Of a DNA stretch of 64,000 nt, positions 4,388 through 29,696 are shown in pieces. The stretch is from the IMG/VR virus record IMGVR_UViG_3300046660_000716, positions 62,001 through 126,000 of that record; one strand, written 5' to 3'. The translations under genes were made by a program, and so were the position numbers. A model generated the notes under the pieces. That model ran no database searches. It was not told the origin of the DNA and was given only the letters and a program-made list of their open reading frames with translations. How positions within the stretch are numbered: the first letter of the stretch is position 1; every line of letters begins with the position of its first letter.

Positions 4388-4397
4388 GAGGCGTGCC

Positions 4398-5426: not shown

Positions 5427-5445
5427 CACCCTCCCTCCGGCGATC

Positions 5446-5453
5446 CATATCAT
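5446..5453 (+). promoter_or_regulatory. CATATCAT motif, putative early phage promoter
   Basis: Intergenic copy of a motif recurring before gene blocks. Confidence 0.6.
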
Positions 5454-5505
5454 GTGGTCGACAGGAGGGAACTCTCCCTCCGCTCAACCACACAAGGAGA
5501 TACAC

Positions 5506-5952: not shown

Positions 5953-6398
5953 TGCGAATGGTGTACATCAAGTACGATGCGGAAAACGTGCGGAGGGACC
6001 TGGAAGCGTTGGGCGTGCAGCCCTACCGCTTCGTGGACACCAAGGGCTTCGGTCCTTCCGCCGAGCTGGTCGAACAGGCCGCCGCACTCAACAAAGAGCT
6101 GCTGTCCAACGATTACCTGGTCCATCCCGTCTTCCACGATGACGAGTGGATGGGAGAGTGGAAGTTCGCGCTGGTCGACCTGGGGCTCCAGACCGGGCCG
6201 CTGCCGGCGCGAGTCCTGACCGAGTTCATCGTGCCGAAGCACGCCGACTGGCACACGCTGTACCTCTTCGGCGAGGCCTGCCGCACGACCTGGCACCAGG
6301 CCAAGCTGGTGGGCAAAGCCGTGATGCTGGCTGGCCAGCTGCGCCAGACTTGCTCGCAGACTGGCGTGCCGGTTGAGCTCATCGTGGCGCACTTATGA
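5952..6398 (+). CDS. hypothetical protein
   Basis: TGATG coupling; 148 aa. Confidence 0.75.
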   Translation: MRMVYIKYDAENVRRDLEALGVQPYRFVDTKGFGPSAELVEQAAALNKELLSNDYLVHPVFHDDEWMGEWKFALVDLGLQTGPLPARVLTEFIVPKHADWHTLYLFGEACRTTWHQAKLVGKAVMLAGQLRQTCSQTGVPVELIVAHL

Positions 6399-6592
6399 TA
6401 GAGCCGCGCGAGATAGCCGGGCGACAGAATGCCCGCCACGTCGGCGACTGGATCTGCCAGGGCGTCACAGACGACTTCGGTACCCTGACCGGCATCTTCG
6501 AGCTGCCGCCGGGCGCCTACGCTGCACGCTACAGCTGGTTCTGGGACACGGACTACGAGTTCGAGTTCTTCGGCGCCGGACCCCGCCGCTAG
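6395..6592 (+). CDS. hypothetical protein
   Basis: ATGA overlap; followed by a terminator. Confidence 0.65.
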   Translation: MIEPREIAGRQNARHVGDWICQGVTDDFGTLTGIFELPPGAYAARYSWFWDTDYEFEFFGAGPRR

Positions 6593-6598
6593 GGGAGG

Positions 6599-6628
6599 AA
6601 GAGGGGTCGCCGGACCCCCTCTTTTTTT
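6599..6628 (+). terminator. intrinsic terminator
   Basis: AAGAGGGGTC / GACCCCCTCTT stem plus T7. Confidence 0.8.
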
Positions 6629-6651
6629 CAGCACAAAGACAGCGAAGAATC

Positions 6652-6659
6652 CATATTAT
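6652..6659 (+). promoter_or_regulatory. CATATTAT variant of the early motif
   Basis: Lies just after a terminator and before SD/ATG 6693. Confidence 0.55.
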
Positions 6660-6692
6660 ACCAATGCTATAGCAATTCCAAGAGAGGAAACC

Positions 6693-7061
6693 ATGGAAAC
6701 ATTTCACTTCACGCGCTTGAACGAGTTTCACTTCAAGCGTCTGCTGGACTACGTGCGCGGTCAGAAGTTCCCGATCCGGTTCAAGACGTCCCGGGACGGC
6801 GTGCTGCACTTCACGGCGCACTTGGACCCAGCCTACGAACTTGACTTCCAGCTGACTGCTGCCGACGTCATGAGCGAAGCAGCCATTGGCGCCCTCGGCA
6901 TCACGAGCTACCTGGAGAAGATATCGTCCAACATGTGCAGGGCCGTCGAGGCGGCGTTCTGCATGCGCGAGATGTTTGACGAAAACGGCGTGGTCACCGA
7001 GCTCGGTAAGAACTTCCCGGATCTGATCAAGTCCACCATCGAGTATATCGATGGAAATTAG
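6693..7061 (+). CDS. hypothetical protein
   Basis: SD GAGGA; 122 aa. Confidence 0.75.
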   Translation: METFHFTRLNEFHFKRLLDYVRGQKFPIRFKTSRDGVLHFTAHLDPAYELDFQLTAADVMSEAAIGALGITSYLEKISSNMCRAVEAAFCMREMFDENGVVTELGKNFPDLIKSTIEYIDGN

Positions 7062-7536
7062 GTCCGGCGCCGGCTACCCGGCATCCGCGCTGAGCAACTT
7101 CGCCGCCCACTTCTTCGTCTTCGACGGCGTGGAGTGCGGATCGATGGAGGGTCTCCTGCAGGCGCTCAAGTTCGACAAGCCGCACGTCCAGGCGAACGTT
7201 TGCCGCATGACGGGCATGGCGGCCAAGATCCGCGGTAAGAAGCGCAACAAGGCGTGGCAGTCCAAGCAGACGCTCTGGTGGAAGGGAGCGGCCTACGACC
7301 GACACGGAGCCGAGTACCAGGCCCTGCTCGACAGCGCGTACGGCGCGCTCGCGGACCAGAACGAGGGCTTCCGCCGGGCGCTGCTCGCCACGGGAAAGTC
7401 CGTTTTCACCCACGCGCTCGGCAGCTCCAAGGAGTCCGAGACCGTCCTGACCGCCAGGGAGTTCTGCTCCCGGCTCCACGCGATCCGCAATCGCATAACG
7501 AAACCCTGTGATCCGCCGACGAGGAAAACCAAATGA
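7051..7536 (+). CDS. NADAR-family protein, T4 gp30.3 / AdfN-like ADP-ribosyl-guanine hydrolase
   Basis: ALSNFA..F..DGV..GSMEGLLQALK, TLWWKG, QNEGFRRALLAT, ETVLT..EF. This follows the recalled T4 gp30.3 pattern along its whole length. Confidence 0.85.
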   Translation: MEIRSGAGYPASALSNFAAHFFVFDGVECGSMEGLLQALKFDKPHVQANVCRMTGMAAKIRGKKRNKAWQSKQTLWWKGAAYDRHGAEYQALLDSAYGALADQNEGFRRALLATGKSVFTHALGSSKESETVLTAREFCSRLHAIRNRITKPCDPPTRKTK

Positions 7537-7943
7537 GCGAGCGAACCGAAGAGACGTTCGACGAGTACTGCGAGCGCCAGCGCCGGCAGTTCTGGTGGCT
7601 CGCCCGGTGGATGGCGTTCATCATCGCCGCGATGATAGTTCACCTGGCGGTGAGCATATACTGTGGCGATCGCGATTCCGCGATCAATCGCCGCGAGATG
7701 GCGATCGCCGGCCACGTGCCGGCGGCTCTCACGGCGCCGCGCCCGGTCCGCGTCGGAGACACGATGTTCTGGTACGACAGGCGAGGGCACGGCAAGCGGC
7801 AAGCCCAGATCTACTGGTGCGAGGGCATCGGCGGCCGATACGAGTCGCTGGGGATGTGCCGCCTCAGCCACGTGCTCACCGAGGAGGACATGGCGCGCAT
7901 GCAGCACCTAGACATCCGCCTCGGCGACAGAGTTCGATTTTAA
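7533..7943 (+). CDS. single-TM membrane protein
   Basis: Hydrophobic WWLARWMAFIIAAMIVHLAVSIYC. Confidence 0.75.
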   Translation: MSERTEETFDEYCERQRRQFWWLARWMAFIIAAMIVHLAVSIYCGDRDSAINRREMAIAGHVPAALTAPRPVRVGDTMFWYDRRGHGKRQAQIYWCEGIGGRYESLGMCRLSHVLTEEDMARMQHLDIRLGDRVRF

Positions 7944-7958
7944 CGAAAGGAAGACCAA

Positions 7959-9074
7959 ATGAGCACACCGACACCCGCGTTCAAGGACGTCCCGACCCAG
8001 GCCAGCGGGCGCTGGGAGGTCGCCACGACCGGCATCTTCACGCACGAGCGCGCCCTGTGGGTGATGAGCGGCGGCGGTTACATCCAGCCGGCCATCACCG
8101 TGGCCACGCTCGGCGACGGGAGCGTCTTCCGCGTGGCAGTGCTGGAGGGCGGCGCTTGGTCTGGCGACGTCTGGACCGACTACGAGCCTGTGGGCGGCTA
8201 CAGCTACATGCCGCGCCAGTTGGACGACATGCGCGCATCGGCGTGGCTGCTGGCCTACGTCAACCACAAGATGCACGAGTACGACCACCCGCGCATGGGG
8301 CAGGCGAAGAAGGGACGGATGGACCGCCTGCTGTTCGACGTTGATGCCGCGCTGGAGAAGGTCGTCCGCGCGCTGGAGTACAAGGACCTGCGCACGCTGA
8401 TGGAGATGTACATCCCGTCGAACGCCCGGTCCGAGAGCGCCAGGAACCTCATGGGCTACGCCCTGAAGATCGGCGCGATTCCGGCCGACAGCGCCTACCG
8501 CGCCCATGCGATCATGCGTCAGCGCGAGGACGAAAATGGCGGCGAGGAGTTCTTCTTCACCGCCCTCCACCACCGCGACACCGCCCTCAGCAAGGGCGAG
8601 CGCTACCTGGACGGCTGGTTCGTGCCGGACGTCCTGCAACAGTCACCAACCGAGCAAGGAAAGAGCATCATGTCAATCGTACACATGGACGTCAAGTCCG
8701 ACGGCCCCGTGGCCCTCCTGAAGGCGCTGGACCTCGCCATGCTCTTCGATGGCCACTTCACCCACACGCGTGCGGGCAAGAACGAAGAGGGCTACGGCAC
8801 GATGGACTTCATCCGCCACTACGGAAGCCAAGCCCTGCCTCCCGAGTACACCCCTCTGCCGTTCAGCATGGACAAGAACCCGGCCGCGGTGGCCGACTTC
8901 GTGAGCGCGTGGCTGAAGAACGGCGACGTCTACCCCCGCCCCAACAACCGCGGCGACGGCTCCCTCAACCGCGGATGGCGGGTCCAGGTCCGCAGCGGCC
9001 TCGACGTCACGTTCGGGATGGACCCCACCCCGGCGATCCGCGTGACCACGTACTTCAACTACTACGGGAAGTGA
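7959..9074 (+). CDS. hypothetical protein, probably two fused units (internal start near 8670)
   Basis: 371 aa; internal A/C-rich leader with AAGGA before MSIVH. Confidence 0.75.
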   Translation: MSTPTPAFKDVPTQASGRWEVATTGIFTHERALWVMSGGGYIQPAITVATLGDGSVFRVAVLEGGAWSGDVWTDYEPVGGYSYMPRQLDDMRASAWLLAYVNHKMHEYDHPRMGQAKKGRMDRLLFDVDAALEKVVRALEYKDLRTLMEMYIPSNARSESARNLMGYALKIGAIPADSAYRAHAIMRQREDENGGEEFFFTALHHRDTALSKGERYLDGWFVPDVLQQSPTEQGKSIMSIVHMDVKSDGPVALLKALDLAMLFDGHFTHTRAGKNEEGYGTMDFIRHYGSQALPPEYTPLPFSMDKNPAAVADFVSAWLKNGDVYPRPNNRGDGSLNRGWRVQVRSGLDVTFGMDPTPAIRVTTYFNYYGK

Positions 9075-9445
9075 CCGTGAAGCTCATCAATCTGAGCCTG
9101 CATGTGCGGGACAACGGCCCGTGGAAGCGGCAAGCGGGCGGCGCGGCGTGGTCCGGCATGGAGTACCATCGCCAGCATATCATGGATGCGGTGAAGGCGC
9201 TGCACTCCTGCGGCGCCACGCTGATCCACATCCCGCTCGACCCGCTCTCGCTCGACCAGTCGAACGACGCGTTCGTGATGCACCGCTTCTTCGGCGACGA
9301 CCACCGCGTCTCTCCCGTCGTGCGCCGCCTGGCCGTCATCCCGGACGGGTCCGCGCGCATCGAGTGGTGGCAGGCGAACTCCAGCCGGCTGGTCTGCACC
9401 GACCAATTCACGCTCCCAGAAACCGAACCAGAAAGAACCGCATGA
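9071..9445 (+). CDS. hypothetical protein
   Basis: GTGA overlap; coupled to gyrA by ATGA. Confidence 0.65.
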   Translation: MTVKLINLSLHVRDNGPWKRQAGGAAWSGMEYHRQHIMDAVKALHSCGATLIHIPLDPLSLDQSNDAFVMHRFFGDDHRVSPVVRRLAVIPDGSARIEWWQANSSRLVCTDQFTLPETEPERTA

Positions 9446-11955
9446 CCAACATGGCAGACAGCAGCATCATCGACGGCGAACTGGAGGACATGTTCCGCCT
9501 CAAGTACACCGCCTTCGCCAAGTCCAGCAACGGCCGCGCCATCCCGGACGCGCGCGACGGCCAGAAGCCCGTGCACCGCCGCGTGCTCTTCCAGACCCTT
9601 CAGACCGCTCCGCCGAGCCGCGGCACCGTCAAGTGCGCCTCCATCGTGGGCAACGCGCTGGGGAACTACCACCCGCACGGCGACACGTCGGTGTACGACG
9701 CGATGTGCCGGATGGTGCGCCCCTACGCCAACAACGTCACCATGATCGTCGGCCAGGGCAACTTCGGCGCCATCGACGGCTCGTCCGCGGCCGCCATGCG
9801 CTACACCGAGGCCAAGCTGGACCCGCTGGCCAACTGGCTGATGATGGACGGCGTGGACGAGGGCGCGGTCCCGATGGCGCCGAACTACGACGGCCGCCTC
9901 ACGGAGCCGACGCTGCTGCCCGTGAAGATGCCCATGCTGCTCCTGAACGGCGTGCCTGCCGGCTCGATTGGGGTCGGCTTTGCCTCCGTCATCCCCTCCC
10001 ACAACGCGGCCGAGCTCGCGACCGCCTCGAAGTACGTGCTGCAGTGCATGGCGGCCGGCGTGGAGCCGCTGCTGGCGGACATCCTGACCGCGATGCCAGG
10101 CCCGGACTTCCCGACCGGCGGCACGGTGAGCTCCGCCGAGGAGATCGCCCGCATGTACGAGACGGGCCGCGGCCTGCTCAAGATCCGCGCCACCGCGAAG
10201 TGCGAGGACGGCGAGGGCCGCTCCGGCGGCCGCATCGTGATCACCTCCATCCCCTACGCCCAGAACACCACGTCACTGGTCGAGGAGATCATGGACGCCA
10301 AGCTGGGCAAGAAGCTGGCCGCCGGCAAGGGCCGCGCGGAGCCCCTGGTCCCGGAGGTCAAGGACGTCCGCGACGAGACCACCACAGACCGCGTGACCAA
10401 GCAGGTCAAGGTGCGCATGGTCATCGAGGTCAAGGCCGGCGAGGACCCGCGCGTGACGCTGGAGAAGCTCTACATCAACACGTCGCTGGAGACCACCTTC
10501 GCCGCCAACATGGTCGCGCTGGACGAGGAGGGCCAGCCGATCATGCTGACGCTCGTCGAGGCCATCACGCGCTGGGCCAACTTCCGCGCCGAGTGCGTGC
10601 GCCGCCAGGCCGCCGCCGACCTGGAGCGCGCCCGCGACCGGGAGCACGTCATCAACGGCCTCGTGGCCGCCATCCCGAAGATCGAGGACGTCATCTCCGT
10701 GGTCAAGGGGTCGGAGTCCGAGGAGGTCGCCAACTACCAGCTGCGCGTTCTCATTCCCTGCACCAGCAAGCAGGCGACCGCCATCCTGGCCATGCGCATC
10801 AGCCGCCTCACCGGCCTGCGCACCGAGGAGCTGGAGGCCGAGCGCGTCGAGCTGCACAACCGGGCGAACGACCTGATCGTGCTGCTGACATCCCAGGAGG
10901 CCGTCATCGCCCACATCGAGCGCGAGCTCGACGAGGCGTCAGCGAAGCTCGCCCGCCCGCGCCGCACGGTCATCGCCGAGTTCAGCGCCACGGGCGACCC
11001 GCGCGACCTGGTGGTCCCCGAGCACTGCCTGGTGCAGGTCACCGGCCGCGGCTACCTCAAGCGGTCGCAGGCCGACGAGTTCCGCACCCAGCTGCGCGGT
11101 GGCAAGGGCAACAAGAAGGCCACCGTCAAGGTCAAGGACGAGGACGTGCTGCAGTCGGTCGTCGGCTGCCACTCGCACGACCGCCTCTTCGCCGTGACGG
11201 ACGGGGGCGCGGTCGTGCGGCTTGAGGCCCACGAGGTGCCGGTCGTCAGCGCCGGCCGCCACGCCGCCAACCTCGGCTTCGAAGAGGGCGAGCTGGTCCG
11301 GGCGCTGCTGGTCAGCCCGTGGCCGGTGCCGGAGGAGGCGCAGGCCGTCTTCGCTACCACCGACGGCGAGGTCAAGCGCGTCGCCATGCCGGACCTGTCC
11401 AGCAAGATGACAAAGCGTCTGGTCTTCTTCCGCTCCGCGACGGAGAGCAACATCCGCGGCGGCATCGAGCTGCCGACCGGCGAGACCTCCGGCGACGTGT
11501 TCCTCGCGTCGGCGCACGGCCAGGGCACGCGCTTCGCCCCGAGCGAGGTCCGCCTGTCCAAGCGCGACAGCGGCGGGGTCCGCGGCATGGACCTCCGCGA
11601 GGACGACCGCCTGGTCTCCATCGGCCGCATCGACTCGGAGGACCAGCTGATCCTCTGCGTCACCAGCGACGGCATCGGCAAGCGCACCGCGTCGTCCGCG
11701 TTCCCCACCCAGGGCCGCGGCAACAAGGGCCGCATCCTGATCCGCCCGCGCCCCGGCGCCGAGCTGGTCCAGGCGCTGGTGGTCCGCGACGCCGACAGCG
11801 TGCTGATCGCGACGAAGGACGGCGTGACCGTCCGGATCCGCGTAGGCGAGGTCAAGGAGCTCGGCCGCTCAGCGATGGGCGTCAAGCTGATCGCCCTGAA
11901 CAAGGGCGACGTCGTCGTGTCCGCGGCGATCCTGCCGCTGGACGACGAGGAGTAA
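9442..11955 (+). CDS. gyrA: DNA gyrase subunit A
   Basis: RAIPDARDGQKPVHRR, YHPHGDTSVYD, GQGNFG, catalytic AAMRYTE, GPDFPTGG, GyrA-box QLRGGKG and beta-pinwheel blades. True start is ATG 9442. Confidence 0.95.
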   Translation: MTNMADSSIIDGELEDMFRLKYTAFAKSSNGRAIPDARDGQKPVHRRVLFQTLQTAPPSRGTVKCASIVGNALGNYHPHGDTSVYDAMCRMVRPYANNVTMIVGQGNFGAIDGSSAAAMRYTEAKLDPLANWLMMDGVDEGAVPMAPNYDGRLTEPTLLPVKMPMLLLNGVPAGSIGVGFASVIPSHNAAELATASKYVLQCMAAGVEPLLADILTAMPGPDFPTGGTVSSAEEIARMYETGRGLLKIRATAKCEDGEGRSGGRIVITSIPYAQNTTSLVEEIMDAKLGKKLAAGKGRAEPLVPEVKDVRDETTTDRVTKQVKVRMVIEVKAGEDPRVTLEKLYINTSLETTFAANMVALDEEGQPIMLTLVEAITRWANFRAECVRRQAAADLERARDREHVINGLVAAIPKIEDVISVVKGSESEEVANYQLRVLIPCTSKQATAILAMRISRLTGLRTEELEAERVELHNRANDLIVLLTSQEAVIAHIERELDEASAKLARPRRTVIAEFSATGDPRDLVVPEHCLVQVTGRGYLKRSQADEFRTQLRGGKGNKKATVKVKDEDVLQSVVGCHSHDRLFAVTDGGAVVRLEAHEVPVVSAGRHAANLGFEEGELVRALLVSPWPVPEEAQAVFATTDGEVKRVAMPDLSSKMTKRLVFFRSATESNIRGGIELPTGETSGDVFLASAHGQGTRFAPSEVRLSKRDSGGVRGMDLREDDRLVSIGRIDSEDQLILCVTSDGIGKRTASSAFPTQGRGNKGRILIRPRPGAELVQALVVRDADSVLIATKDGVTVRIRVGEVKELGRSAMGVKLIALNKGDVVVSAAILPLDDEE

Positions 11956-12006: not shown

Positions 12007-13026
12007 ATGAGCGACAAGAACTACAAGCAGATGACGACGCCGCAGCTGAGCAACGAGTACGCTCGTCGCCTCGGACCAGGTCACGTCTTTCTGAGCCCCG
12101 ACGAGGCCGGCTTCCGCAACGAGATGGTCGCCGCGCTGGAAAAGCAGGACGCCGTGGACCTGCCCGGCGAACTCGACGAGTACATGCAGATGCCGCTGAG
12201 CGCCCTGGAGAGCCTGGCCGTGCGCTACGACCGCCACTCCTACACCAGGCTCAGAGAAGTGCACGAATCGAGCCGGGGCAAGGAATCGGAGCTGCGCGCC
12301 GCCCACACCTTCCGCATGGCCATGGTCGCGCTGCTGAAGGGTCTGACGGTCGCGAAGGTCGAAGAGAATGTGGCTGAGGCCGGCAACCGCCGCATGACCC
12401 AGGCCGAGTCCGAGGCGATGGACGCGCCCACCGACATGACGGACGAGAAGGCTCGGCTGATGGCGGTGCAGATGAAGGCGCGCGCCAGGCCGGTGATCTT
12501 GAAGAGCTCCCTGCACAAGATCGTCGACACGCGACCGCGTCGCCGCCACGGGGGCGCGCCCCTTCCGAAATTCCTGCGGGAGGCGCTGAACCCGGCGTAC
12601 GGAGACGGCACGGTCGAAGGCGAGGTGCAGGTTCATATCGCGCAAAGTCGCAGAGCAGCCATCGAAGTTAAAGCCAACTTGACCTCCAGCGAGGTGCATC
12701 ACGTGGGGCTGGCAATCGACGCGCTGCTGTGCGGCTACTCGGGCGCATTCGTCGCGAGCGTCGACACCGACGACCGCGGCATCGTGATCGGCGCCGACTA
12801 CGAGGTCGGCTCGATCGAGTCCGACAGCAAGGGCGCTTCCGTGCGCGCCAGCGCCGAGGACGCCATGTACGACATCGTTTTCGACGACACCGAGGCGTCC
12901 GGCACGCTGAAGCTCGTGCGTCTGGTCCTGCTCGTGATGCTGCCGAACGGCCACGTCGCGCCGTGGGAGCCGCGGAGCACCAAGCCGTCCACCCGTGTGG
13001 CGTTCTGCAACCAGTACTACGCCTGA
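12007..13026 (+). CDS. hypothetical protein, C-terminal paralog family C domain
   Basis: TDDRGIVI..YDIVFD..LLVMLPNGHVAPW, shared with 19458 and 20822. Confidence 0.8.
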   Translation: MSDKNYKQMTTPQLSNEYARRLGPGHVFLSPDEAGFRNEMVAALEKQDAVDLPGELDEYMQMPLSALESLAVRYDRHSYTRLREVHESSRGKESELRAAHTFRMAMVALLKGLTVAKVEENVAEAGNRRMTQAESEAMDAPTDMTDEKARLMAVQMKARARPVILKSSLHKIVDTRPRRRHGGAPLPKFLREALNPAYGDGTVEGEVQVHIAQSRRAAIEVKANLTSSEVHHVGLAIDALLCGYSGAFVASVDTDDRGIVIGADYEVGSIESDSKGASVRASAEDAMYDIVFDDTEASGTLKLVRLVLLVMLPNGHVAPWEPRSTKPSTRVAFCNQYYA

Positions 13027-13059
13027 TCAACAACGCAACACCAACCGAAGGAGAATGAA

Positions 13060-13572
13060 GTGAACACCGAATCCAATACCGAAGTGGCGGTCGCGTCCCT
13101 GAAGCTGTCCGGCCAGAAGTCCATGGTCGTCGCGTCCCTGTACTCGTGCCGGGAGTCCAACGGCTACAGCGTCCAGTCGGACGGCTGGCGCGCGCTGGTC
13201 GTGCCGACCGAATTCCTCGACCTGCTCTCCGAGGGCGACAGCCCCGTTTCCAAGACCGACGTCACCAACGGCCGCGAGCTGGACTTGGCCAACAATCCGA
13301 CCGCTTACGCCGACCAGATCGGCCTGGAGTTCGACACCACTCAGGACCAGTACGACGACTTCGAGCTGTGGCTGGCCGACGGCGAGTCCAAGCTGGGCGC
13401 CCTGTTCGGCCGCTGCGAGCTGCTGCCGAACGAAGTGACGAGCCTCGTCAGTATGTGCGGCGACGTCGAGCAGGCCGCCAAGATGGCGCTGTCGGCCGGC
13501 CAGGGCATGGCAAACACCCGCTTCACCGGAAAGCCCGTCTTCTTCGGCCTCTGCATCCACTGGGACAACTGA
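13060..13572 (+). CDS. hypothetical protein, paralog family A copy 1
   Basis: Aligns by eye with 14088..14609 over its full length. Confidence 0.8.
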   Translation: MNTESNTEVAVASLKLSGQKSMVVASLYSCRESNGYSVQSDGWRALVVPTEFLDLLSEGDSPVSKTDVTNGRELDLANNPTAYADQIGLEFDTTQDQYDDFELWLADGESKLGALFGRCELLPNEVTSLVSMCGDVEQAAKMALSAGQGMANTRFTGKPVFFGLCIHWDN

Positions 13573-13573
13573 T

Positions 13574-14086
13574 ATGAACTCCATCCAAGACGTATACAGT
13601 CAGCTCGACACCAACACGCTGGGGCACCTGCTGTCCGAGCGCGCCCCCGCGGTGGCGGCCTCCGTCACCGCCCATGCTGTGCACCGCCGTCGCGAGCTGC
13701 TGACGGCACTGCGCAAGCTGGCGGAGCCAGGCCGCGTCGATACCATGAGCATCATTCCGGTCCGGCGCGGCTCGTTTGTCGATGCTGTACTCGCAGTAAT
13801 CGGCACGCGCGTGATCGTGTCGCCGGTGGAACCGGACGAGGACGGCAATCTGAAGCTGCTGCCGGACTCGACAGGCCAGCTGATGATCGACGACGATCTG
13901 ATCTGCCTGCTCCCGGTCGTCGCAGCCTACGTCACTACCAAAGGCCACCTGACGCTCCTGGCCGACCACCCGGAGCGTGGCTGGATCGAGTTCGCCGTCA
14001 CCGCCGCGGAAGAGGACGATCACATCCTGCCGCTGGAGCCGAAGCAAGTCAAGATCATGTACAACCTGAACGTGAAAGAAGACTGA
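13574..14086 (+). CDS. hypothetical protein, paralog family B copy 1
   Basis: FVDAVLAVIGTRVIV..GQLMI..VAAYVTTKGHL. Confidence 0.8.
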   Translation: MNSIQDVYSQLDTNTLGHLLSERAPAVAASVTAHAVHRRRELLTALRKLAEPGRVDTMSIIPVRRGSFVDAVLAVIGTRVIVSPVEPDEDGNLKLLPDSTGQLMIDDDLICLLPVVAAYVTTKGHLTLLADHPERGWIEFAVTAAEEDDHILPLEPKQVKIMYNLNVKED

Positions 14087-14087
14087 C

Positions 14088-14609
14088 ATGGGCGCAGCAC
14101 AAATGGATCTGAACCTCGCCGAGCGCGACGACCTGAGCGTCGGCGAGACGCTCGACATCATCAACAGCGGCGAGATGGTCCTCGTCGCGGCGGTCATCTA
14201 CTCGATGACCGAGCAGACCGGCTGGACCACCGTGATCAACGGCATCGTCGTGGCCCTGGTGCCACCGACGTTTCTCGGCATGCTCACGCACGGCAGCGAC
14301 GTGCGCGTGCTGGGCATCGATTACAAGCTGGACCTGGTGAACGAGCGCACGGTCGCCTCGGACTACTGCGCCCTCGACTTCGAGAGCGAGCACGAGCAGG
14401 CCGAAGACTTCGCCACGTGGGTCACCGGGCAGGACAGCGCGTTCGAGGAGGCGCTTGGGATGGCCACCATGCTGCGCCGCGTAACCGGCACCGACGCCGA
14501 GTCGATGGCCCAGGCGTTCCACGACGTCCCGGAGGCGCTCGAGCACGCGCTCGGAACCGAGCTGGCGGACTGCGTCCTGCCGTTCGCCCTGTGCGCAAAC
14601 TACGGCTAA
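14088..14609 (+). CDS. hypothetical protein, paralog family A copy 2
   Basis: Aligns by eye with 13060..13572. Confidence 0.8.
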   Translation: MGAAQMDLNLAERDDLSVGETLDIINSGEMVLVAAVIYSMTEQTGWTTVINGIVVALVPPTFLGMLTHGSDVRVLGIDYKLDLVNERTVASDYCALDFESEHEQAEDFATWVTGQDSAFEEALGMATMLRRVTGTDAESMAQAFHDVPEALEHALGTELADCVLPFALCANYG

Positions 14610-14621
14610 GGGGGATTCGTC

Positions 14622-15017
14622 ATGCATACAGTGACCCAGGACATGCTGTCCCTAATTCGCCCGGAGCATTTGAACCCGCTGGTACGGCGTGTGATCGCTG
14701 AGCTGGGGCAGTACGTCACGATCAAGATGGAGGACGAAGTCGACGACATCGCCGACGAAACCAACGAGTACGAGTTCCCCGAGCGCACCGCAAATACGCT
14801 GCTTTGCGGCGGCGAGGACTCGTGGGGTGCGCTGGTCGGCGCCTTCGTCCTCGAGGGCGAATTTGTGATCGCAGCCAACTTCGGCGACGACGGCGTGGTC
14901 TTCTACTCGCTGTCCGGAACCGAATCACCGCTGTGCCACGTCAGCAATGTGCTCTCAGCCAAGGACATCATCATCGGCCGATCGCTCGACGAGCTCAACC
15001 CGGAACTGGCAGAATGA
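14622..15017 (+). CDS. hypothetical protein, paralog family B copy 2
   Basis: LVRRVIAELGQYVTI..SWGALVGAFVLEGEFVIAANF. Confidence 0.8.
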   Translation: MHTVTQDMLSLIRPEHLNPLVRRVIAELGQYVTIKMEDEVDDIADETNEYEFPERTANTLLCGGEDSWGALVGAFVLEGEFVIAANFGDDGVVFYSLSGTESPLCHVSNVLSAKDIIIGRSLDELNPELAE

Positions 15018-15433
15018 GCGCCACTGAGACCATCAGCCTGGGAACCGGCATCGCCGAGGGGAACAGGACGCGGCTCGTCGAGTCCGTGCTGAACTACCTC
15101 GGCGACAAGGTGATCATCACCACGGACGACGAGGGACTCAAAACCTACGAGATGGCCACGCCGCACCGCGGGCGCCTCATGGTCAGCGAGGAAGGCGCAT
15201 GGGGCGAGGTCATCGGCGCCTACACGGAGAAGGGCCACCTGGTCATGGTGGCCCGGTTCAGCGACCCGGAGTCGCTGGAAGTCCAGGATGACCCGCTCCG
15301 CGGCGTGTTCACCTTTTCGATCACGAAGATCCACGAGTACTATCCGACCGCGTTCACCCGGCCGCGCGTGCTGAAGGGTCACGAGATCTGCGTCTTCAGC
15401 ACGATCGCCGAAATCTACCCGGAGGCCGCGTGA
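15014..15433 (+). CDS. hypothetical protein, paralog family B copy 3
   Basis: LVESVLNYLGDKVII..GRLMV..AWGEVIGAYTEKGHLVMVARF; ATGA overlap. Confidence 0.8.
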   Translation: MSATETISLGTGIAEGNRTRLVESVLNYLGDKVIITTDDEGLKTYEMATPHRGRLMVSEEGAWGEVIGAYTEKGHLVMVARFSDPESLEVQDDPLRGVFTFSITKIHEYYPTAFTRPRVLKGHEICVFSTIAEIYPEAA

Positions 15434-15840
15434 GCTGGCAGCAGGGGCGGCTCGTCACGCTACAGGAGATACTGGAATCGGCCACGTCGGTCCTGCCGTC
15501 GCGCTTTCAGATCGCCGATCCAGTGTGGGTCTGGGTCAACGAGGAGCACGGCTTCGAGCGCCCGATCGAGGGAGTGATAGTAGGCGCGTCGTTCGGCCTG
15601 CTCGGACGGATGTCCTACAGCATCGCTTTCCGCATCGGGACTGGACCGTACTACGCCGTCGCCACCGGCGTGCGCGGCTGGCTCACATCCCCGGGTGAAT
15701 CCCTATCGCCGGAGGACGGCCTTGTCGAAGTCACGAAAATCGAGGGCGCCGTGAGGAGTGTGAAGGCCGTCGAGCGCCGCGCTTCTATGCGCATCGTACC
15801 ACCTCCCGGCACGCCGCCGGAACCGGAGGAACCGGATTAG
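15430..15840 (+). CDS. hypothetical protein
   Basis: GTGA overlap; last gene before a terminator. Confidence 0.7.
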   Translation: MSWQQGRLVTLQEILESATSVLPSRFQIADPVWVWVNEEHGFERPIEGVIVGASFGLLGRMSYSIAFRIGTGPYYAVATGVRGWLTSPGESLSPEDGLVEVTKIEGAVRSVKAVERRASMRIVPPPGTPPEPEEPD

Positions 15841-15843
15841 ACG

Positions 15844-15871
15844 GATGCGGCCGAGCGCCGCATCTTTTTTT
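15844..15871 (+). terminator. intrinsic terminator
   Basis: GATGCGGC-cgagc-GCCGCATC plus T7. Confidence 0.85.
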
Positions 15872-15898
15872 CACGAGTTGAGCCCCTCCGCTTATGAG

Positions 15899-15906
15899 CA
15901 TATCAT
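15899..15906 (+). promoter_or_regulatory. CATATCAT motif
   Basis: Lies after a terminator and before SD/ATG 15941. Confidence 0.65.
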
Positions 15907-15940
15907 TCCTGTGAGACTAACCCACACAAAGGAGAACCAC

Positions 15941-16381
15941 ATGTCACTATCACCAGCAAACACGCAGCAGACCGACCCGCGCGTCCGCGCCAGCGCCCAC
16001 GACGACCTCAAGATTCTCGCCAAGGCATGTCTGGTCACCGCCAACCTGGCGGACAGCCTGATGTCGCGCAACATGGTCGCGTCCCTGTACGCGGACGGCA
16101 TCGGCGAGGCGCTGACGGAGTACTTCATCGGCGACCCGTTCACCCGCACCGAGGTGGACTGCGCCGGGGCGCTGGTCAAGGCAGCCTTCGAAGAGGCGGA
16201 CGTTGGCCCGCTGGTGAACCGCTGCGGCGACCTGGAAGTCACCTACGGTGAAGATCTGAACAGCGACGACGCCGTCGAGAACCAAGCGTGCATGATCCGC
16301 ATCCGCTTCGAGGCCCGCTCGACCAAGCGCCGCCACTGCATCGAGGTGCCGTTCGGCTGCAACGGCGCGAGGCGCCTGTGA
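15941..16381 (+). CDS. hypothetical protein
   Basis: SD AAGGAG before ATG 15941. Confidence 0.75.
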   Translation: MSLSPANTQQTDPRVRASAHDDLKILAKACLVTANLADSLMSRNMVASLYADGIGEALTEYFIGDPFTRTEVDCAGALVKAAFEEADVGPLVNRCGDLEVTYGEDLNSDDAVENQACMIRIRFEARSTKRRHCIEVPFGCNGARRL

Positions 16382-16698
16382 CCGGTCTGCCAGAAGCCAT
16401 GTTCCCCACCAGCGGTCCGACCGTCATCTCCGAGCACATCGATGACTACGTCAAGGGCATGCGCCATGAGGACGGTCGCGTCGAGATCTTCATCAAGTCG
16501 GACTTGGTGATCGCATTTCCGACCCAGGAAGCAGCCCTCGCCAAGCTCAACGAGATGGCGCCGGACATGAAAAACCGCGGCCACTTCATCCGCGTCGTCG
16601 GCCGCCGCACCATGCGGTCCTACGACGTGAAATCTATGGTCCGGGTGCTCCGCAAGATCCTGAAGCCCATCAAGCCACCGAAAGCGAAGAAAGCATGA
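16378..16698 (+). CDS. hypothetical basic protein
   Basis: GTGA overlap. Confidence 0.65.
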   Translation: MTGLPEAMFPTSGPTVISEHIDDYVKGMRHEDGRVEIFIKSDLVIAFPTQEAALAKLNEMAPDMKNRGHFIRVVGRRTMRSYDVKSMVRVLRKILKPIKPPKAKKA

Positions 16699-17234
16699 AG
16701 AAGATGAACCAAGAGAAGGGTCCGGCCTACGTGGACTTCAGCCGCGAGACCATGTACCCCGTCGTGCGCGCCGTGCTTGCGGCCACGCGGTTCTCCGGCC
16801 ACATCTACAACCTGGAGCGCGTAGACCATCCGGTAACGTCCGACGCGCTCTGCGCCGAGGCGGTCCGCGTGCTCAAGGCGGCAGGATACACCGACCGCGT
16901 GTACAACTGCATCACGCCGCGCATGACGCTGCAGCGCGAGGGCTTCCCGTGGGAGTACGCGGAAGTGGAGGTCGACCTGCGCAAGTTCGCCCACGGCGAC
17001 GACGCCTGCCAGCATGAGTACATCCGCCTGTACTGGGAGGAGGGCGGCGGCGCGATGGACAGCGGCACGCCGCACACGTATATCATGTGCATGCGCTGTG
17101 CCAAGAGCCCGGTCCTGCCGAGCATCGGCACACGCCGCAAGCCCGGCGCCGGGCTGACCGTGGAGCGCGTGCCAGCTCCGCCCAGCCTCTGGCGTCGCGT
17201 CCTGCAGTTCCTGAACCCCTGCGACAAAACGTAA
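16695..17234 (+). CDS. hypothetical protein (CQH..CMRC motif)
   Basis: ATGA overlap; 179 aa. Confidence 0.75.
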   Translation: MKKMNQEKGPAYVDFSRETMYPVVRAVLAATRFSGHIYNLERVDHPVTSDALCAEAVRVLKAAGYTDRVYNCITPRMTLQREGFPWEYAEVEVDLRKFAHGDDACQHEYIRLYWEEGGGAMDSGTPHTYIMCMRCAKSPVLPSIGTRRKPGAGLTVERVPAPPSLWRRVLQFLNPCDKT

Positions 17235-17246
17235 AGGAAGCAATCA

Positions 17247-17594
17247 ATGAAAAAAGTGATCTACGTCGCGCTGGCCCTGGCCTTCGCGCTCCCGGCACAC
17301 GCCGGATTCGTCACCGGCGTGATCGTCGGGAGCGCGATGTCCGACAAGGGCAAGAAGCCTCCGGGCGACTCCATGGTCGTGGCCTCCGACACCCACGACG
17401 TCCTGGTCTGCGTGCGCAAGCGAGACAGTCCCGGGCTGTGCAACGACGTGTGCTTCTGGGACGAGGCCAAGAGGATCAACCGCTGCCTGACGCCGGCCGA
17501 GTACGCGGGTCGCGCCGGCTACAAGACGCTGCACCGCGTCGGCGCCGCGTTCCACGACGGGACGAGCTACATCACCATGGAGGTCTCCCGCTAG
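17247..17594 (+). CDS. exported Cys-containing protein
   Basis: Signal peptide MKKVIYVALALAFALPAHA. Confidence 0.75.
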   Translation: MKKVIYVALALAFALPAHAGFVTGVIVGSAMSDKGKKPPGDSMVVASDTHDVLVCVRKRDSPGLCNDVCFWDEAKRINRCLTPAEYAGRAGYKTLHRVGAAFHDGTSYITMEVSR

Positions 17595-17631
17595 GGGACT
17601 CCGACCAACCATAACCGAAGGAGAATCACCA

Positions 17632-18078
17632 ATGACCGAACAAGACCAACTCATCCAGAAGCTGGAGGCGGTCGGCGCCTCCACCGAGGAGATGAAGTCC
17701 ATCGCCAAGGACCTGAAGACGCCGGTCTGTCCGTACGGCTGGATCATCGACATCGACCACATCCCGAGTGAGGGCGCGGCCGAAGGCACCAACAGCAACG
17801 CCAAGGGCATGATGGGGCCGCGTGGCATCAACGACGACGTCGCGGCCCTCCTGAAGCTCGGCTCCGGCCGCGAGTTCCGCATGTACGACGACGACGCCGA
17901 GCTGTACTACACCGGCCGCATCATCGTCCGCGGCGACCCGTGCAGCACCGGCGATATGAAGAGCGACGCCTTCGGCGAGGAGTACTTCGCGCCGCTGGAC
18001 GACTTCGGCATGCCGAACGCCGGCGCCGTCCGCATCGACTACCAGAATGCCGGAAGCGGCAAGTGGGAGACGCTGTGA
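17632..18078 (+). CDS. conserved phage hypothetical protein
   Basis: FRMYDDD..LYY.G..PLDDFGMPNAG motif, recalled from other phages. Confidence 0.8.
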   Translation: MTEQDQLIQKLEAVGASTEEMKSIAKDLKTPVCPYGWIIDIDHIPSEGAAEGTNSNAKGMMGPRGINDDVAALLKLGSGREFRMYDDDAELYYTGRIIVRGDPCSTGDMKSDAFGEEYFAPLDDFGMPNAGAVRIDYQNAGSGKWETL

Positions 18079-19397
18079 GCGCCGCCGCGACCGTGCAGGA
18101 ACCGGAGATCGAATTCGACATCCGCCTGGTCTGGCCCGACGGCAGCCACGGCGAGTACAAGCAGAAGGCCCCGAACCCGACCGTCGCCATGGACCGCCTG
18201 CTGTTCCGCATCATGCCCGACGCGCAGCGCGCTGACGACTTCCGGCGCCAGCTCGCGGAGAACCAGGCCGGCGCCACCGTGTCCTGGCCCGGCACGGCGA
18301 GGTTCGGCTGGCACCTCTCGCCGGACACCGAGTACAACCGCGAGTACGTCGTCACCCTGCCGTGGAACCCGGACAACCCCGGCTCCGACGAGGGCGACTA
18401 CTCGACGAGCGTCTGGGCCTCGTCCGACACCAGCGCCATCCTCCAGGTGGCCGAGGAGATGGCCGACCACAGGGACTCCGGCGCGCAGACCGAGCAGGAG
18501 CAGGCCGAGTTCGCCGCGCGCCTGGTCGATCTCGCGTCGGGCGAGCCGTGCCGCTACGCCCTGCTGAGGGAGCAGCCGCTCCTCCCGCCGGCCCTTCCTC
18601 CCGCCCTCGATCGCAAGCGCGAGACGGTGCTCTACCAGGTCTTCGAGCGCTACCGCCGCCTCGTCATCGCGTGCCTCCAGACCGTCGTCCTGGCGCCGTA
18701 CGACAGCCCGTCGAGCAACGGTCGCTTCGAGATCCTGGAGGAGCTCCCGCCGTCCGAGTACATCCGGGCGCTGGAGGGCCACCGCATCCTGACGGTCGAC
18801 CGCATGGCCGACTTCATGGACGACCACGCCGTATCGATCCTCGACTTCTGCGAGGACCTGTCGAACAAGGCCGTCGCGGAGATGACCAAGTTCGTGCACC
18901 TGCACGGCGAGTCGATCGCGGCGGTCAAGATCATGGCGAGCAAGGTGCTCGGCGCCCACGGCAAGGAGCCGGTGGAGATGGACCCCAACGTCCACAACCA
19001 GCACTCCCGCTTCCGCGTCGAAGCGTTCTCCCCCACCAGCCAGGTCTACGTGATCGAGTGGCAGCCGCGCGGCGCGCCGTTCGTTCGGCTGCGCACCGTC
19101 GAGCGCGTCAACGTGTCGATCGGCCCGAACATGGAGCAGACGTTCACTTACGTCTTCATCCGTGTGCCGGGGGACGACGCGTACTCGGACATGACCAACA
19201 GCATCAACGTGCACGGCCGTCTCGAGAGCGCCGAGCGCCAGCTGAGTCGAATCGGCCACTGCAGCCTCTCCACCGACACGATCCGCACCGCCGGTCAGCC
19301 GGACGTCCATAAGCTCGTGTACAAGTCCACCGTCAAAGGCTGGACGCATCACGAGGACGGCTGGGATGCCGCCGACGAGCACTGGACCAAATCGTAA
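18075..19397 (+). CDS. hypothetical multidomain protein
   Basis: GTGA overlap; 440 aa. Confidence 0.8.
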   Translation: MSAAATVQEPEIEFDIRLVWPDGSHGEYKQKAPNPTVAMDRLLFRIMPDAQRADDFRRQLAENQAGATVSWPGTARFGWHLSPDTEYNREYVVTLPWNPDNPGSDEGDYSTSVWASSDTSAILQVAEEMADHRDSGAQTEQEQAEFAARLVDLASGEPCRYALLREQPLLPPALPPALDRKRETVLYQVFERYRRLVIACLQTVVLAPYDSPSSNGRFEILEELPPSEYIRALEGHRILTVDRMADFMDDHAVSILDFCEDLSNKAVAEMTKFVHLHGESIAAVKIMASKVLGAHGKEPVEMDPNVHNQHSRFRVEAFSPTSQVYVIEWQPRGAPFVRLRTVERVNVSIGPNMEQTFTYVFIRVPGDDAYSDMTNSINVHGRLESAERQLSRIGHCSLSTDTIRTAGQPDVHKLVYKSTVKGWTHHEDGWDAADEHWTKS

Positions 19398-19457
19398 ACG
19401 CAGCACCCCGACCCGGCACCCCGCCGGGCGGGCAACCCAAAGAAAGGTAAGCTCCCC

Positions 19458-20393
19458 ATGAAGATCGTATCCACCAACAACACCCTGCCCAACACCCACA
19501 AGCTGGCGGCCCAGTCCACCATGACCGACCCGCGCTTCCCGAACGGCGAGCTGCAGGCGATCGCGGCGGCCCTGGGCTCGTCCTTCCCGGCCCACCTGGA
19601 GAGCGGCGTCCAGGAGACGATGCAGAAGGTCGCGACCATGCCCAAGCTGCGCGTCTGGGCTGACAAATCGGCCCTGTCTGCCAGCGTCGTGCGCTTCCTG
19701 ACCCACGCATGCGGCGCCACGCTGTACTCCAAGCTGAACGCCGGCCGCAGCCCCGTCTTCGTGCGCAACAACAAGACCGAGGACATCGGCCTGGCCTACG
19801 ACGTGGCGTACTCGGCCCACGGCGTGTCCGACGCGCAGGACGAGACCATCCGCAACGCATGCGGCGTCGAGGGCACGAACGGCGTGACCGTGATCGAAGA
19901 CGACGGCAAACACTTCGTCGCAGCCATCCATGTGATGGCCCTGCTGCCGACCGGCTTCGTCGCTGCGTGGCCGCTGGTGGAGTGCACGTTCGGCAAGGAC
20001 GATGACGAGGAAGAGCCGACCAACCTGATGAGCGCCATCATCCGCACGGTCACCACCTCGGCCCGCAAGATCAATGCTGACGCCTTCCGCGCCCAGTACT
20101 GGAACGACGCCGAAGGCAACATCGTCGTGGCCGGCCCGCACCTGACCAACACGGGTAAAAACATGACCGTGATCGGCCGGCTGGAGGGCATGGAGGTCGC
20201 CCGCTTCGACGCCATCGAGCTGTGCTGCGAGGCCCACGCGGAGCAGCACAAGGAAAGCCTGATGGACGCGTATCGCGGCCAGATCGCCAACACGCTGGGC
20301 CTGGACGCGGCTCAGTGGGCGGCGCTGGAGGTCGATCTGGTGAAGAGCGACACCGCGGTGGCGGAGACCTGCACGTCCCGCCACGTGCACTAG
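19458..20393 (+). CDS. hypothetical protein, family C domain
   Basis: TEDIGLAYDVAYSAHG..VMALLPTGFVAAW. Confidence 0.8.
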   Translation: MKIVSTNNTLPNTHKLAAQSTMTDPRFPNGELQAIAAALGSSFPAHLESGVQETMQKVATMPKLRVWADKSALSASVVRFLTHACGATLYSKLNAGRSPVFVRNNKTEDIGLAYDVAYSAHGVSDAQDETIRNACGVEGTNGVTVIEDDGKHFVAAIHVMALLPTGFVAAWPLVECTFGKDDDEEEPTNLMSAIIRTVTTSARKINADAFRAQYWNDAEGNIVVAGPHLTNTGKNMTVIGRLEGMEVARFDAIELCCEAHAEQHKESLMDAYRGQIANTLGLDAAQWAALEVDLVKSDTAVAETCTSRHVH

Positions 20394-20402
20394 GAGCGGA
20401 GG

Positions 20403-20732
20403 ATGACCACTCACCTGCCCGAGACCATAGTGCTGGACGACATCCTCCGCCCGGAGGCGGTCGTCGTCCACAACCACCTGGCGTTCCTGTGGGAAGCCAG
20501 CCCGAAAGCGAAGCGGGATGAGGTCAAGGAGGGGGACGTCGTGCTCTTCCAGGGCTTCGACACCGAGGACCTGGAGCGCCCGGCCGACGCCCCGACGTAC
20601 CACTTCGCCACCGTGTACTGCGCCCAGGACGGCCGCCTGATGCTGGCGATCAGCGGCATGCACACGATCCAGGGCCGGATAACGGTCGATGACCCCGAAG
20701 AGCAGTTCGTAGTCATGGTCCCGCGAGACTAA
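20403..20732 (+). CDS. hypothetical protein
   Basis: SD AGGAG; weak family B-like ATVYCAQDGRLML. Confidence 0.75.
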   Translation: MTTHLPETIVLDDILRPEAVVVHNHLAFLWEASPKAKRDEVKEGDVVLFQGFDTEDLERPADAPTYHFATVYCAQDGRLMLAISGMHTIQGRITVDDPEEQFVVMVPRD

Positions 20733-20752
20733 AGCGGGCCCAACCAGGGAAT

Positions 20753-20798
20753 AGCTCCGGCGGTGGCCCCTGAAGGCCACCGCCTAGCTTTCCCTTTT
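20753..20798 (+). terminator. intrinsic terminator
   Basis: GGCGGTGGCC-cctgaa-GGCCACCGCC plus a T-rich tail. Confidence 0.7.
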
Positions 20799-20821
20799 GA
20801 AACCAAACCAGAGAGAACCGC

Positions 20822-21637
20822 ATGACAATCACCCAAGTAGTAGCATCGAACCCGAAGCCAATTCGCTTCCTGGTAAGCGCCAGCGCCGAGCAGGATCCGC
20901 TGGGCCGCGCCTCCGCGATGGCCATGATCGCCCAGCCGGGTCACCTCCCCCAGTGGCTGAGCTACGCTGACATCATGGTCGGCAGCCTGGTGGCGGCGAA
21001 GCACTTCGAGCTCGACAACGACATGCCGCCTGGGATCGAGCCGATGCCCGGCGAGTACATGCTGGCGGAGCACACCCTGAATCTGGTCCTCGCGAAGAAG
21101 CTGAGCGCTTTGCCGGCATCGTCGGTGTTCGGCGAGGACATCATGTTCGTGCAGAACGAGGGCTCGGACGACGTCGGCATCGTGATCGACATGGCCGCGC
21201 GCATCTACGGGCTGGAAAACGGAAACGACGAGAATAACGAGTTCGATCTGATCATCGAGCGCGACGGCAATTACCTCGGCTTCCAGACCCTGCTGCTGGT
21301 GGCTCTTCCGAACGGCGCCGTCGATCGCTGGGACGCCGACAAGGTCAGCCACATCGAAGGCGAGGACGGGCTGGAGCTGTACCGCGCCCAGATCTGGGTC
21401 GTGGGCGACGACATCGCCGCGCCGACCCCGCCGGCCGACGTCCAGCTGCCGAAGAACTGGGCCGTGAGCGGAACCGACGTCAACGGCGAGTTCTACACCC
21501 ACATCTACAACAGCATGGACGAGGAAACCGCCAAGGCCACTTTCATCTCCGAGATGGGCACCGAGGGCGACGAGGCCGGCGCGGCTGCGCAGATCCTGGG
21601 CGTCGTCAGCTCCTACACCGAGATCATGTCTGCATAA
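20822..21637 (+). CDS. hypothetical protein, family C domain
   Basis: SDDVGIVIDMAARIYG..FDLIIE..LLVALPNGAVDRW. Confidence 0.8.
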   Translation: MTITQVVASNPKPIRFLVSASAEQDPLGRASAMAMIAQPGHLPQWLSYADIMVGSLVAAKHFELDNDMPPGIEPMPGEYMLAEHTLNLVLAKKLSALPASSVFGEDIMFVQNEGSDDVGIVIDMAARIYGLENGNDENNEFDLIIERDGNYLGFQTLLLVALPNGAVDRWDADKVSHIEGEDGLELYRAQIWVVGDDIAAPTPPADVQLPKNWAVSGTDVNGEFYTHIYNSMDEETAKATFISEMGTEGDEAGAAAQILGVVSSYTEIMSA

Positions 21638-23492: not shown

Positions 23493-24719
23493 ATGTCCAA
23501 CACAACGCAGGGTAAGGTCTTCCTTTCCCGAGAGTACCACAAGGTCGAGGAGGCGCTGTCGCGCCCCGGCGCCGCGGCCCGCCTGCACGCCCACATGCAG
23601 GGCGTCATCGGGTCCGACCGGCTCATGAAGGCCCTGGAGGCCACGCATCCCGGCGAGACGGTCTACTTCGGCGACAAGGAGGGCAGCGCCGACCAGGTGC
23701 CGGTTTACGAGATCTCCGGGCTGAACCCGCTCGAGGTGCGCAAGGCCATCAAGGACACCGGCGTCGTCCAGGCGTCCTGGGCGCACGCCAACAAGCCGCT
23801 GTACTGGACGATGATGATGATCATCCGCTTCCACGCGCGCCAGAAGAACACCGCCCCGACCGCGATGAAGGTCGGCTTCCGCGCCGCCGAGATCGAGGAG
23901 AACACGAAGATGGCCGTCATGTTCATGGCCACCGCCATGTACGCCGGCCTGCAGTTCCGCTACTTCCGCCGCTTTTACCAGCCGAACGCCATGGCCTACG
24001 CGATGAACACGCTGACGGACAAGTTCACGCTGAAGCAGGAGGGCACGATGATCAAGACCATCTTGACCATCGCGTGGCGCGCGCACCTCAAGTACGCCCC
24101 GGACCTGGAGAACGGCTCCGACCTGCTCCTGCTCAAGTACCTCGTCAGCATGTGGGGCCGCCTGAACGGGATGGTCAAGGCGCTGAAGAACCAGTACGAG
24201 AACACCAAGCTCGCCGGCAACTACCTCAACCAGTCCCGCGACCGCCACGACGACGGCGAGATGGTCGAGCGCGAGACGGACGGCGGGCGGGTGGAGGCCA
24301 CGGTCAACAAGGTCAACGAGGCGTTCTTCGGGGAGCCGATGCCGCCGCGCATCGTCGACATCGCCGCGCAGATGACCGACACGCCGCAGCAGAGCCTGGT
24401 GCTGGCGGTCAACGAGATCCGACAGGGCGACCCAGGCCCGGTCCAGGAGGCCATCCACATCATCGTGGAGCTCTTCTTCGAGGAGACGCGGGGCACACGC
24501 GAGGACATCAGGACGCGGAACTTCCTGTCGTTCTGCAACAGCGTGTACATGCGATCAAATACAGTGGATCAAAGAGTCGAAAAGCTCAAGGCGATCCTTG
24601 ATAAACTCCTCCGCGAGCGCAGCCCGCAGTACCTCCGCACGAACCGGGAGGCCACCAAGGGCGCGTTCCGCAAGGCCATGTACCTGACCCTGGTGCTCTA
24701 CATCCAGACCAAAGCCTAG
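23493..24719 (+). CDS. probable promoter-specificity (sigma-like) subunit of the non-virion RNAP, AR9 gp226 / phiKZ gp68-like
   Basis: YF....NAMAYAMNTLTDKFTLKQ, RLNGMVKAL, YLNQ, FLSFCNSVYMRSNT..KLKAILDKLL, FRKAMY. These follow the recalled AR9 gp226 pattern; all-helical, 408 aa. Confidence 0.7.
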   Translation: MSNTTQGKVFLSREYHKVEEALSRPGAAARLHAHMQGVIGSDRLMKALEATHPGETVYFGDKEGSADQVPVYEISGLNPLEVRKAIKDTGVVQASWAHANKPLYWTMMMIIRFHARQKNTAPTAMKVGFRAAEIEENTKMAVMFMATAMYAGLQFRYFRRFYQPNAMAYAMNTLTDKFTLKQEGTMIKTILTIAWRAHLKYAPDLENGSDLLLLKYLVSMWGRLNGMVKALKNQYENTKLAGNYLNQSRDRHDDGEMVERETDGGRVEATVNKVNEAFFGEPMPPRIVDIAAQMTDTPQQSLVLAVNEIRQGDPGPVQEAIHIIVELFFEETRGTREDIRTRNFLSFCNSVYMRSNTVDQRVEKLKAILDKLLRERSPQYLRTNREATKGAFRKAMYLTLVLYIQTKA

Positions 24720-28530: not shown

Positions 28531-28531
28531 C

Positions 28532-29086: not shown

Positions 29087-29089
29087 GCC

Positions 29090-29437: not shown

Positions 29438-29464
29438 GGGCGTCGGAGCCCCGCAGAGCGAGCG

Positions 29465-29472
29465 CATATCAT
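29465..29472 (+). promoter_or_regulatory. CATATCAT motif
   Basis: Intergenic. Confidence 0.6.
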
Positions 29473-29542
29473 GCGTTTGAACCAACAGAGACCATGCGCC
29501 CAAAGGCGCATGGTCCTCTTTCCAACCTTTCAGGAGCCGACC

Positions 29543-29680: not shown

Positions 29681-29696
29681 GACGAAAGGAAGCAAG

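Follow-up and report, generated by a model that had tools for sequence, protein, structure and literature searches.

The virus record IMGVR_UViG_3300046660_000716 has 259,338 bp and direct terminal repeats. The present analysis concerns a stretch of 64,000 nucleotides, bases 62001-126000 of this record, with a GC content of about 65%. This stretch is called here the window, and all positions refer to it unless stated otherwise. Between a gyrA-like gene and a gene encoding an HNH/endonuclease VII-like protein, the window carries three genes, C1, C2 and C3, the products of which share one unit (the C unit) combined with extensions that differ from one protein to the other. On sequence grounds, C1, C2 and C3 are strongly diverged paralogues of a single phage protein family that has so far gone unannotated, and local duplication would account for their number.

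The C genes and their extent

The three genes and their C units are located as follows, where positions in the external profile refer to the profile of 196 positions described in the next section.

12007..13026, + strand: gene C1 (P0001), 339 amino acids (aa), with a private N-terminal extension of ~160-200 aa, then a C-terminal C unit
12610..13020, + strand: C unit of C1, aa 202-338, external-profile positions 43-176
19458..20393, + strand: gene C2 (P0002), 311 aa, with the C unit in the leading two thirds and a private C-terminal extension, aa ~217-311
19668..20105, + strand: C unit of C2, aa 71-173 matching external-profile positions 64-156, with an insertion of ~22 aa after these
20822..21637, + strand: gene C3 (P0003), 271 aa, with the C unit, then a private acidic C-terminal extension, aa ~200-271
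21146..21400, + strand: core of the C unit of C3, aa 109-193, external-profile positions 91-177

A first-pass annotation of this DNA had quoted related segments in the three genes and had taken them as a dispersed paralogue family sharing a domain of about 90 aa. The segments are indeed found in these genes, and the existence of a family of three is borne out by the sequence comparisons presented below. The shared region is longer than proposed. By profile, 85-135 aa are aligned, and in the alignments the C unit extends beyond an 'LPNG..W' hairpin and ends with a strand '..F..Q.W'. In C2, this terminal strand ('AFRAQYW', to aa 216) is displaced by the ~22-aa insertion. On the N-terminal side, a motif of the stand-alone family members found outside the window, 'I-x-K-T-x-L-x-K-L-x-S-x-S', aligns with the N-termini of C2 and C3 and with residues ~161-175 of C1. 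The colinear motif of C1 may begin at aa 161 (nucleotide 12487), without statistical support. Homology of the N-terminal part is therefore unproven, since a profile of the N-terminal third alone fails to recover the C genes of the window.

The extensions belong to the coding sequences. GC content at third codon positions is of the coding type (0.84-0.98) throughout the three open reading frames (ORFs), extensions included, and is 0.88-0.90 in the parts of C1. The N-terminal extension of C1 is probably helical. As the first-pass annotation had stated, the flanking parts are unrelated: residues 1-160 of C1 and the tails of C2 and C3 resemble neither each other nor anything else in the genome or in the related loci, and no homologue of C1 residues 1-160 was found in a collection of 5.8 billion proteins. 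Finally, an independent metatranscriptome of the rhizosphere (run X2) includes a contig of 271 nucleotides identical to positions 20061-20331, inside C2. This identity implies that the same phage or a very close relative was present in a second study, and gives a hint that C2 is transcribed.

Homology and copy number

Pairwise BLASTP comparisons relate C2 to C3 (E 1e-7, 27% identity over 96 aa), C1 to C3 (E 6e-5, 30% over 74 aa) and C1 to C2 (E 1e-3, 26% over 106 aa). When profiles were made from two of the sequences and searched against the full set of 1531 ORFs in the 259-kb genome, the third copy was recovered in each case with E values of 1.2e-5 to 3.9e-5, the next-best ORF having an E value of 0.8-1.8. 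A profile search of the kind suggested by the first-pass annotation thus recovers the left-out copies, and it also reaches outside homologues. Against 1.84 billion representative proteins, the three-sequence profile aligned P0007, P0008, P0009 and P0011 end to end; P0013-P0015 were gained via a word search and P0016 via a metagenome locus. A second profile of 196 positions was built from P0007, P0008, P0009, P0011, P0013, P0014 and P0016, with zero window sequences. This external profile matches C1, C2 and C3 alone (E 3e-9, 1.4e-8 and 1.6e-7), the next ORF being at 0.7. A six-frame search finds exactly three copies in the genome. The alignments (A3, A6) show that the motifs of the family, F-V-x-N..D-x-G-I, L-P-x-G...W and the terminal F..Q.W strand, are present in the window copies.

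That the similarity would arise by chance or from the composition of a genome with 65% GC has a negligible probability and is refuted by the leave-one-out and external-profile results: identities are just 26-30% and the three-sequence profile initially also matched giant Calx-beta/DUF11 repeat proteins, but the left-out copies stand at E ~1e-5 against ~1 for the following ORF, the external profile finds only the three C genes, and the matches to the giant proteins add up 5-16 repeats scoring 4-8 bits apiece and disappear with the external profile. These giant proteins were accordingly rejected as relatives; among Calx-beta, DUF11 and DUF7507 Ig-like repeats, no single domain matches C significantly, the matching stretches scoring 4-8 bits.

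The family is small, with only ~7 outside members known. Sequence searches gave no above-threshold match in Pfam, PHROGs, NCBIfam or the solved structures of the PDB. No additional members came from pattern scans of IMG/VR with alignments A1, A4 and A6 and with the HNH-like protein, from searching 50,697 phage records by tblastn with C2 and P0011, or from megablast of the region.

Relatives and gene order

All the outside C proteins are stand-alone proteins of 170-212 aa that cover the whole unit, with zero fusions, and each of the relative contigs (L004-L007) carries one C gene. The C gene lies upstream of an HNH-like gene in L005, L006 and L007, and downstream of gyrA in L005 and L006. In L005 (3.5 kb), the order is gyrA fragment, C gene (P0008), 86-aa ORF and HNH-like gene. 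In L006 (4.9 kb), the end of gyrA is followed by a 115-aa ORF, a 253-aa protein containing a family B module (see below), a lipoprotein-like ORF and the C gene (P0016), which lies 1.5 kb downstream of gyrA and is separated by two small ORFs from the HNH-like gene. L007 has a C gene, a small gene called here 'MAVYHNY' and an HNH-like gene. In L004, a C gene preceded by a BCS1-like AAA ATPase is followed by a small 'MAVYHNY' gene. The corresponding borders in the window are the following.

9439..11955, + strand: gyrA-like gene bordering the island on the left, with 61% identity to the gyrA fragment upstream of the C gene in L005
21650..22816, + strand: HNH/endonuclease VII-like gene, right border of the island, with 42-50% identity in L005, L006 and L007 (49% in L005)

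The HNH/endonuclease VII-like core of the 21650 product corresponds to aa 54-153 and is followed by a C-terminal part of 230 aa. The same core also matches a PHROG named Srd anti-sigma factor. C1 starts 52 nucleotides past gyrA, in the gyrA-adjacent position as in L005, and C3 ends 12 nucleotides short of the HNH-like gene, as the positional counterpart of the lone C gene of the relatives. In this phage, the two borders enclose 9.6 kb and 17 genes, compared with 1-6 genes in the islands of the relatives, and 8 of these 17 genes belong to three paralogue families, A (two genes), B (three) and C (three).

Predicted structure

An AlphaFold2 model of C1 residues 150-339 was obtained from a 10-row alignment (A7), with a mean predicted local distance difference test (pLDDT) score of 79 and a predicted TM-score of 0.75. 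A single-sequence AlphaFold2 model of C3 had a pLDDT of 31 and was not usable. In the C1 model (model numbering), helices at residues 39-45, 51-65 and 78-93 precede two strands (99-102 and 108-122). An insert modelled with low confidence, which includes a helix at 127-136, leads to strands 141-145, 151-162, 168-171 and 176-178, then a short helix and a last strand. The C unit, of ~135-180 aa, is modelled as a small β-barrel preceded by three helices and, before these, by a short N-terminal segment. The invariant glycines of 'D-x-G' and 'LPNG' sit in the turns of two long hairpins, so that their conservation looks structural rather than catalytic. The strand/PNG/strand hairpin previously proposed from the sequence is found in this model, with the glycine of 'LPNG' in the turn.

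Foldseek searches against the PDB and BFVD gave no match at E 1e-3 or better, and a structure search of the Atlas gave TM-scores of at most 0.37 throughout. Nearly all of the top fold rows are SH3-like barrels (KOW, Tudor, PWWP, BAH, FlgD, R67 DHFR, the C-terminus of BirA, NdhS). They align over model residues 90-180, with 47-69 residues and a root-mean-square deviation of 1.5-3.6 Å, and none is a clear match. The barrel part of C is read as a small SH3-like arrangement and not as a member of those families. In this respect it would resemble the barrels of the KOW of NusG/Spt5, Tudor, PWWP, BAH, the Tudor-like domain of FlgD, R67 DHFR, NdhS and YccV-like proteins; many SH3-like barrels, like C, show no obvious catalytic residues. 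The anti-defence proteins Tad2 and AcrIIA7 of phages appeared as weak Foldseek rows whose E values of 0.08-0.4 and TM-scores by query of 0.14-0.16 are not meaningful. Like C, which lies in a variable region, they are small, non-enzymatic-looking phage proteins.

Probable local duplication and its alternatives

Outside the window, C occurs as a stand-alone gene, once per contig and at the same locus. The copies of the window would therefore be local duplicates with private extensions. In a maximum-likelihood tree, C2 and C3 are grouped with support of 91/95, so they are probably sister copies by their sequences, and C1 is without firm placement. Monophyly of the three is compatible with the tree test (p-AU 0.55). 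The C branches of the window are long, 1.3-1.8 as compared to 0.1-0.7 elsewhere in the tree. The following scenario may be envisaged. The C gene, which stands alone and in single copy upstream of the HNH-like gene within a variable island of the related phages, would have been duplicated locally in this phage, and the island would have grown to 9.6 kb. Each copy would have diverged quickly, bearing its own extension without relatives, and the paralogues may have diversified toward different host or phage targets. An orphan family triplicated by local duplication, with fast divergence and lineage-specific extensions, is the account that we hold to be probable, the role of its products as binding modules, discussed below, being included as a conditional part.

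Two other views of the family deserve consideration, the first of which involves neighbouring genes of the island.

13060..15433, + strand: families A and B, in the order A-B-A-B-B, in the same island and with no detectable relationship to C
13060-13572 and 14088-14609, + strand: family A (A1/A2, E 1e-13)
13574-14086, 14622-15017 and 15014-15433, + strand: family B (B2/B3, E 1.7e-7; B1/B3, E 3.4e-5)

The first-pass annotation had suggested, as a weaker point, that B, C and the protein encoded at 20403 form one superfamily represented by 6-7 copies in 10 kb; on this view they would share a strand-turn-strand barrel. B and C each have a hydrophobic strand, a glycine-containing turn and a strand, they co-occur in the island here and in L006, and small β-barrels can diverge past sequence recognition. 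Nevertheless, the comparison of the C profile (10 sequences) with that of B (4 sequences) by hhalign gives a probability of 0.09%, a further comparison of the two gives 0.14%, and the probabilities for 20403 are 0.11% with C and 1.4% with B. Moreover, the motif stands at differing relative positions in the B and C alignments, and no profile gives cross-recovery: the B genes and 20403 are missed by the C profile as well as by the external one, contrary to the expectation that further copies would be found in this way. A common superfamily is consequently unlikely. The Atlas model of B2 (pLDDT 0.37) was not usable, and feature searches of the Atlas with P0009 and B2 gave nothing usable.

According to the second view, also put forward by the first-pass annotation, C would be a mobile domain of ~90 aa that shuffling had joined to three partner proteins unrelated to one another. 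The lack of detectable similarity between the flanks of C1, C2 and C3 would fit such a process. However, every external member is stand-alone and covers the entire unit, and the three copies of the window are gathered in one island, the borders of which are conserved in the relatives. The extensions match nothing in the genome or in the relatives, and no donor 'partner' gene is visible. Because the extensions are without homologues, there are no recognisable partner domains. The sole candidate fusion, in which the C3 tail would correspond to the 'MAVYHNY' gene of the relatives, was tested and failed: a search of the genome with the profile of this gene was negative, and BLASTP produced no alignment. 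Shuffling is therefore improbable.

Other genes of the island and the phage

Judged from the sequence, the segment 13060-15433 has the appearance of an A-B pair that was duplicated, with one further B. A weaker third A-like ORF occurs outside the window, at genome positions 40100-40714 on the - strand. Family B is conserved in L006, where it forms the first 110 aa of the 253-aa protein (E 2.6e-17 to the gene at 14622). In L006:1216-1977, ~140 aa without counterpart in this genome follow the B module (L006 1216-1560) as a C-terminal fusion, so the family with differing architecture is B, not C. A small protein with a signal-peptide/lipoprotein-like N-terminus is encoded between the B and C genes both in the window (17247-17594) and in L006 (~2070-2282); no sequence similarity is detectable between these two products.

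A strong terminator-like hairpin, with 9 pairs and then a run of seven T, is found at 15843-15865 and is followed by a promoter-like site (to 15906). The hairpin lies between the gene at 15430 and the next one and likely divides the island into two transcription units. Since the start annotated at 15845 overlaps the hairpin, the true start of that gene probably lies further downstream. A scan for sigma-70 promoters gave 2 sites for 1.1 expected, a result that carries no information in a phage with a multisubunit RNA polymerase of its own.

The window further contains a topoisomerase II/GyrB-like gene, a full-length gyrA, and genes for an NAD-dependent ligase, a DNA polymerase and the β subunit of a multisubunit RNA polymerase. 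The genes for gyrB, gyrA, the ligase and the DNA polymerase share one strand, and the + strand carries nearly all genes from 0.2 to 58 kb. The RNA polymerase β subunit (34677-36758) and a phrog_2921 protein (23493-24719) have matches in cultured phages only among the AR9/PBS1, phiR1-37, S6 and LPJP1 jumbo phages, with 26-32% identity (32% for the β subunit with AR9/PBS1/phiR1-37). These restricted matches place the phage, from its sequence, as a distant, high-GC, uncultured relative of the AR9/PBS1 jumbo-phage group. The same DNA was found within a 91-kb contig from a rhizosphere metagenome, possibly its source.

Two other regions of the window may be mentioned. Between the gyrB-like gene (204-2192) and gyrA (9439-11955) lie about 12 orphan genes (2200-9100), a second run of small genes without annotation, enclosed by the gyrase pair. 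At 58039-62892, on the - strand, a 1617-aa protein built of repeats matches head-decoration or tail-fibre-like PHROGs over 7-9 stretches and has a paralogue with 60-73% identity at genome positions 28154-30043. Its repeats generate many spurious antisense ORF 'families', and strand and GC skew both change at this place.

Possible function and significance

Considering that the modelled barrel is small and devoid of conserved polar residues beyond the turns, that the island varies between relatives, and that C is duplicated with fast-evolving paralogues, C proteins may possibly be non-enzymatic binding modules from the early/DNA-metabolism block, with paralogues diversified toward host or phage targets. 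This assignment is tentative. Adjacency to gyrA could alternatively be explained if C were an accessory factor of the phage gyrase. C1 directly follows gyrA, as does the C gene of L005, that of L006 is close downstream, and the weak fold likeness is to nucleic-acid- or protein-binding barrels. Yet adjacency by itself is a weak argument, the upstream neighbour in L004 is the BCS1-like AAA ATPase and not gyrA, and the HNH-like gene is the steadier neighbour. A gyrase factor is thus very unlikely. A broader form of the binding-module idea, in which C would be a new small-barrel family, restricted to AR9-like, high-GC jumbo phages infecting soil bacteria and made of fast-diversifying target binders (for host take-over, counter-defence, or modulation of gyrase or of the HNH-like protein), is doubtful. 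If true, the triplication and the private extensions would give this phage three distinct specificities.

C resembles the lineage-specific paralogue families of jumbo phages: small orphans encoded on one strand between conserved replication genes, locally duplicated, evolving fast, and varying in number among related phages. It is unlike the other such families in being absent from Pfam, PHROGs, NCBIfam and the sequences of the PDB and in its few outside members. As an ordinary local gene-family expansion, it is of modest interest and leaves general views unchanged. Nonetheless, C enlarges the catalogue of orphan genes of jumbo phages by an unannotated family that has a usable model and a defined locus, and the gyrA/HNH-like island illustrates growth from 1-6 genes to 17 through duplication of three families. 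This knowledge would help in annotating the phage clade and in picking candidates for screens of host interactions.

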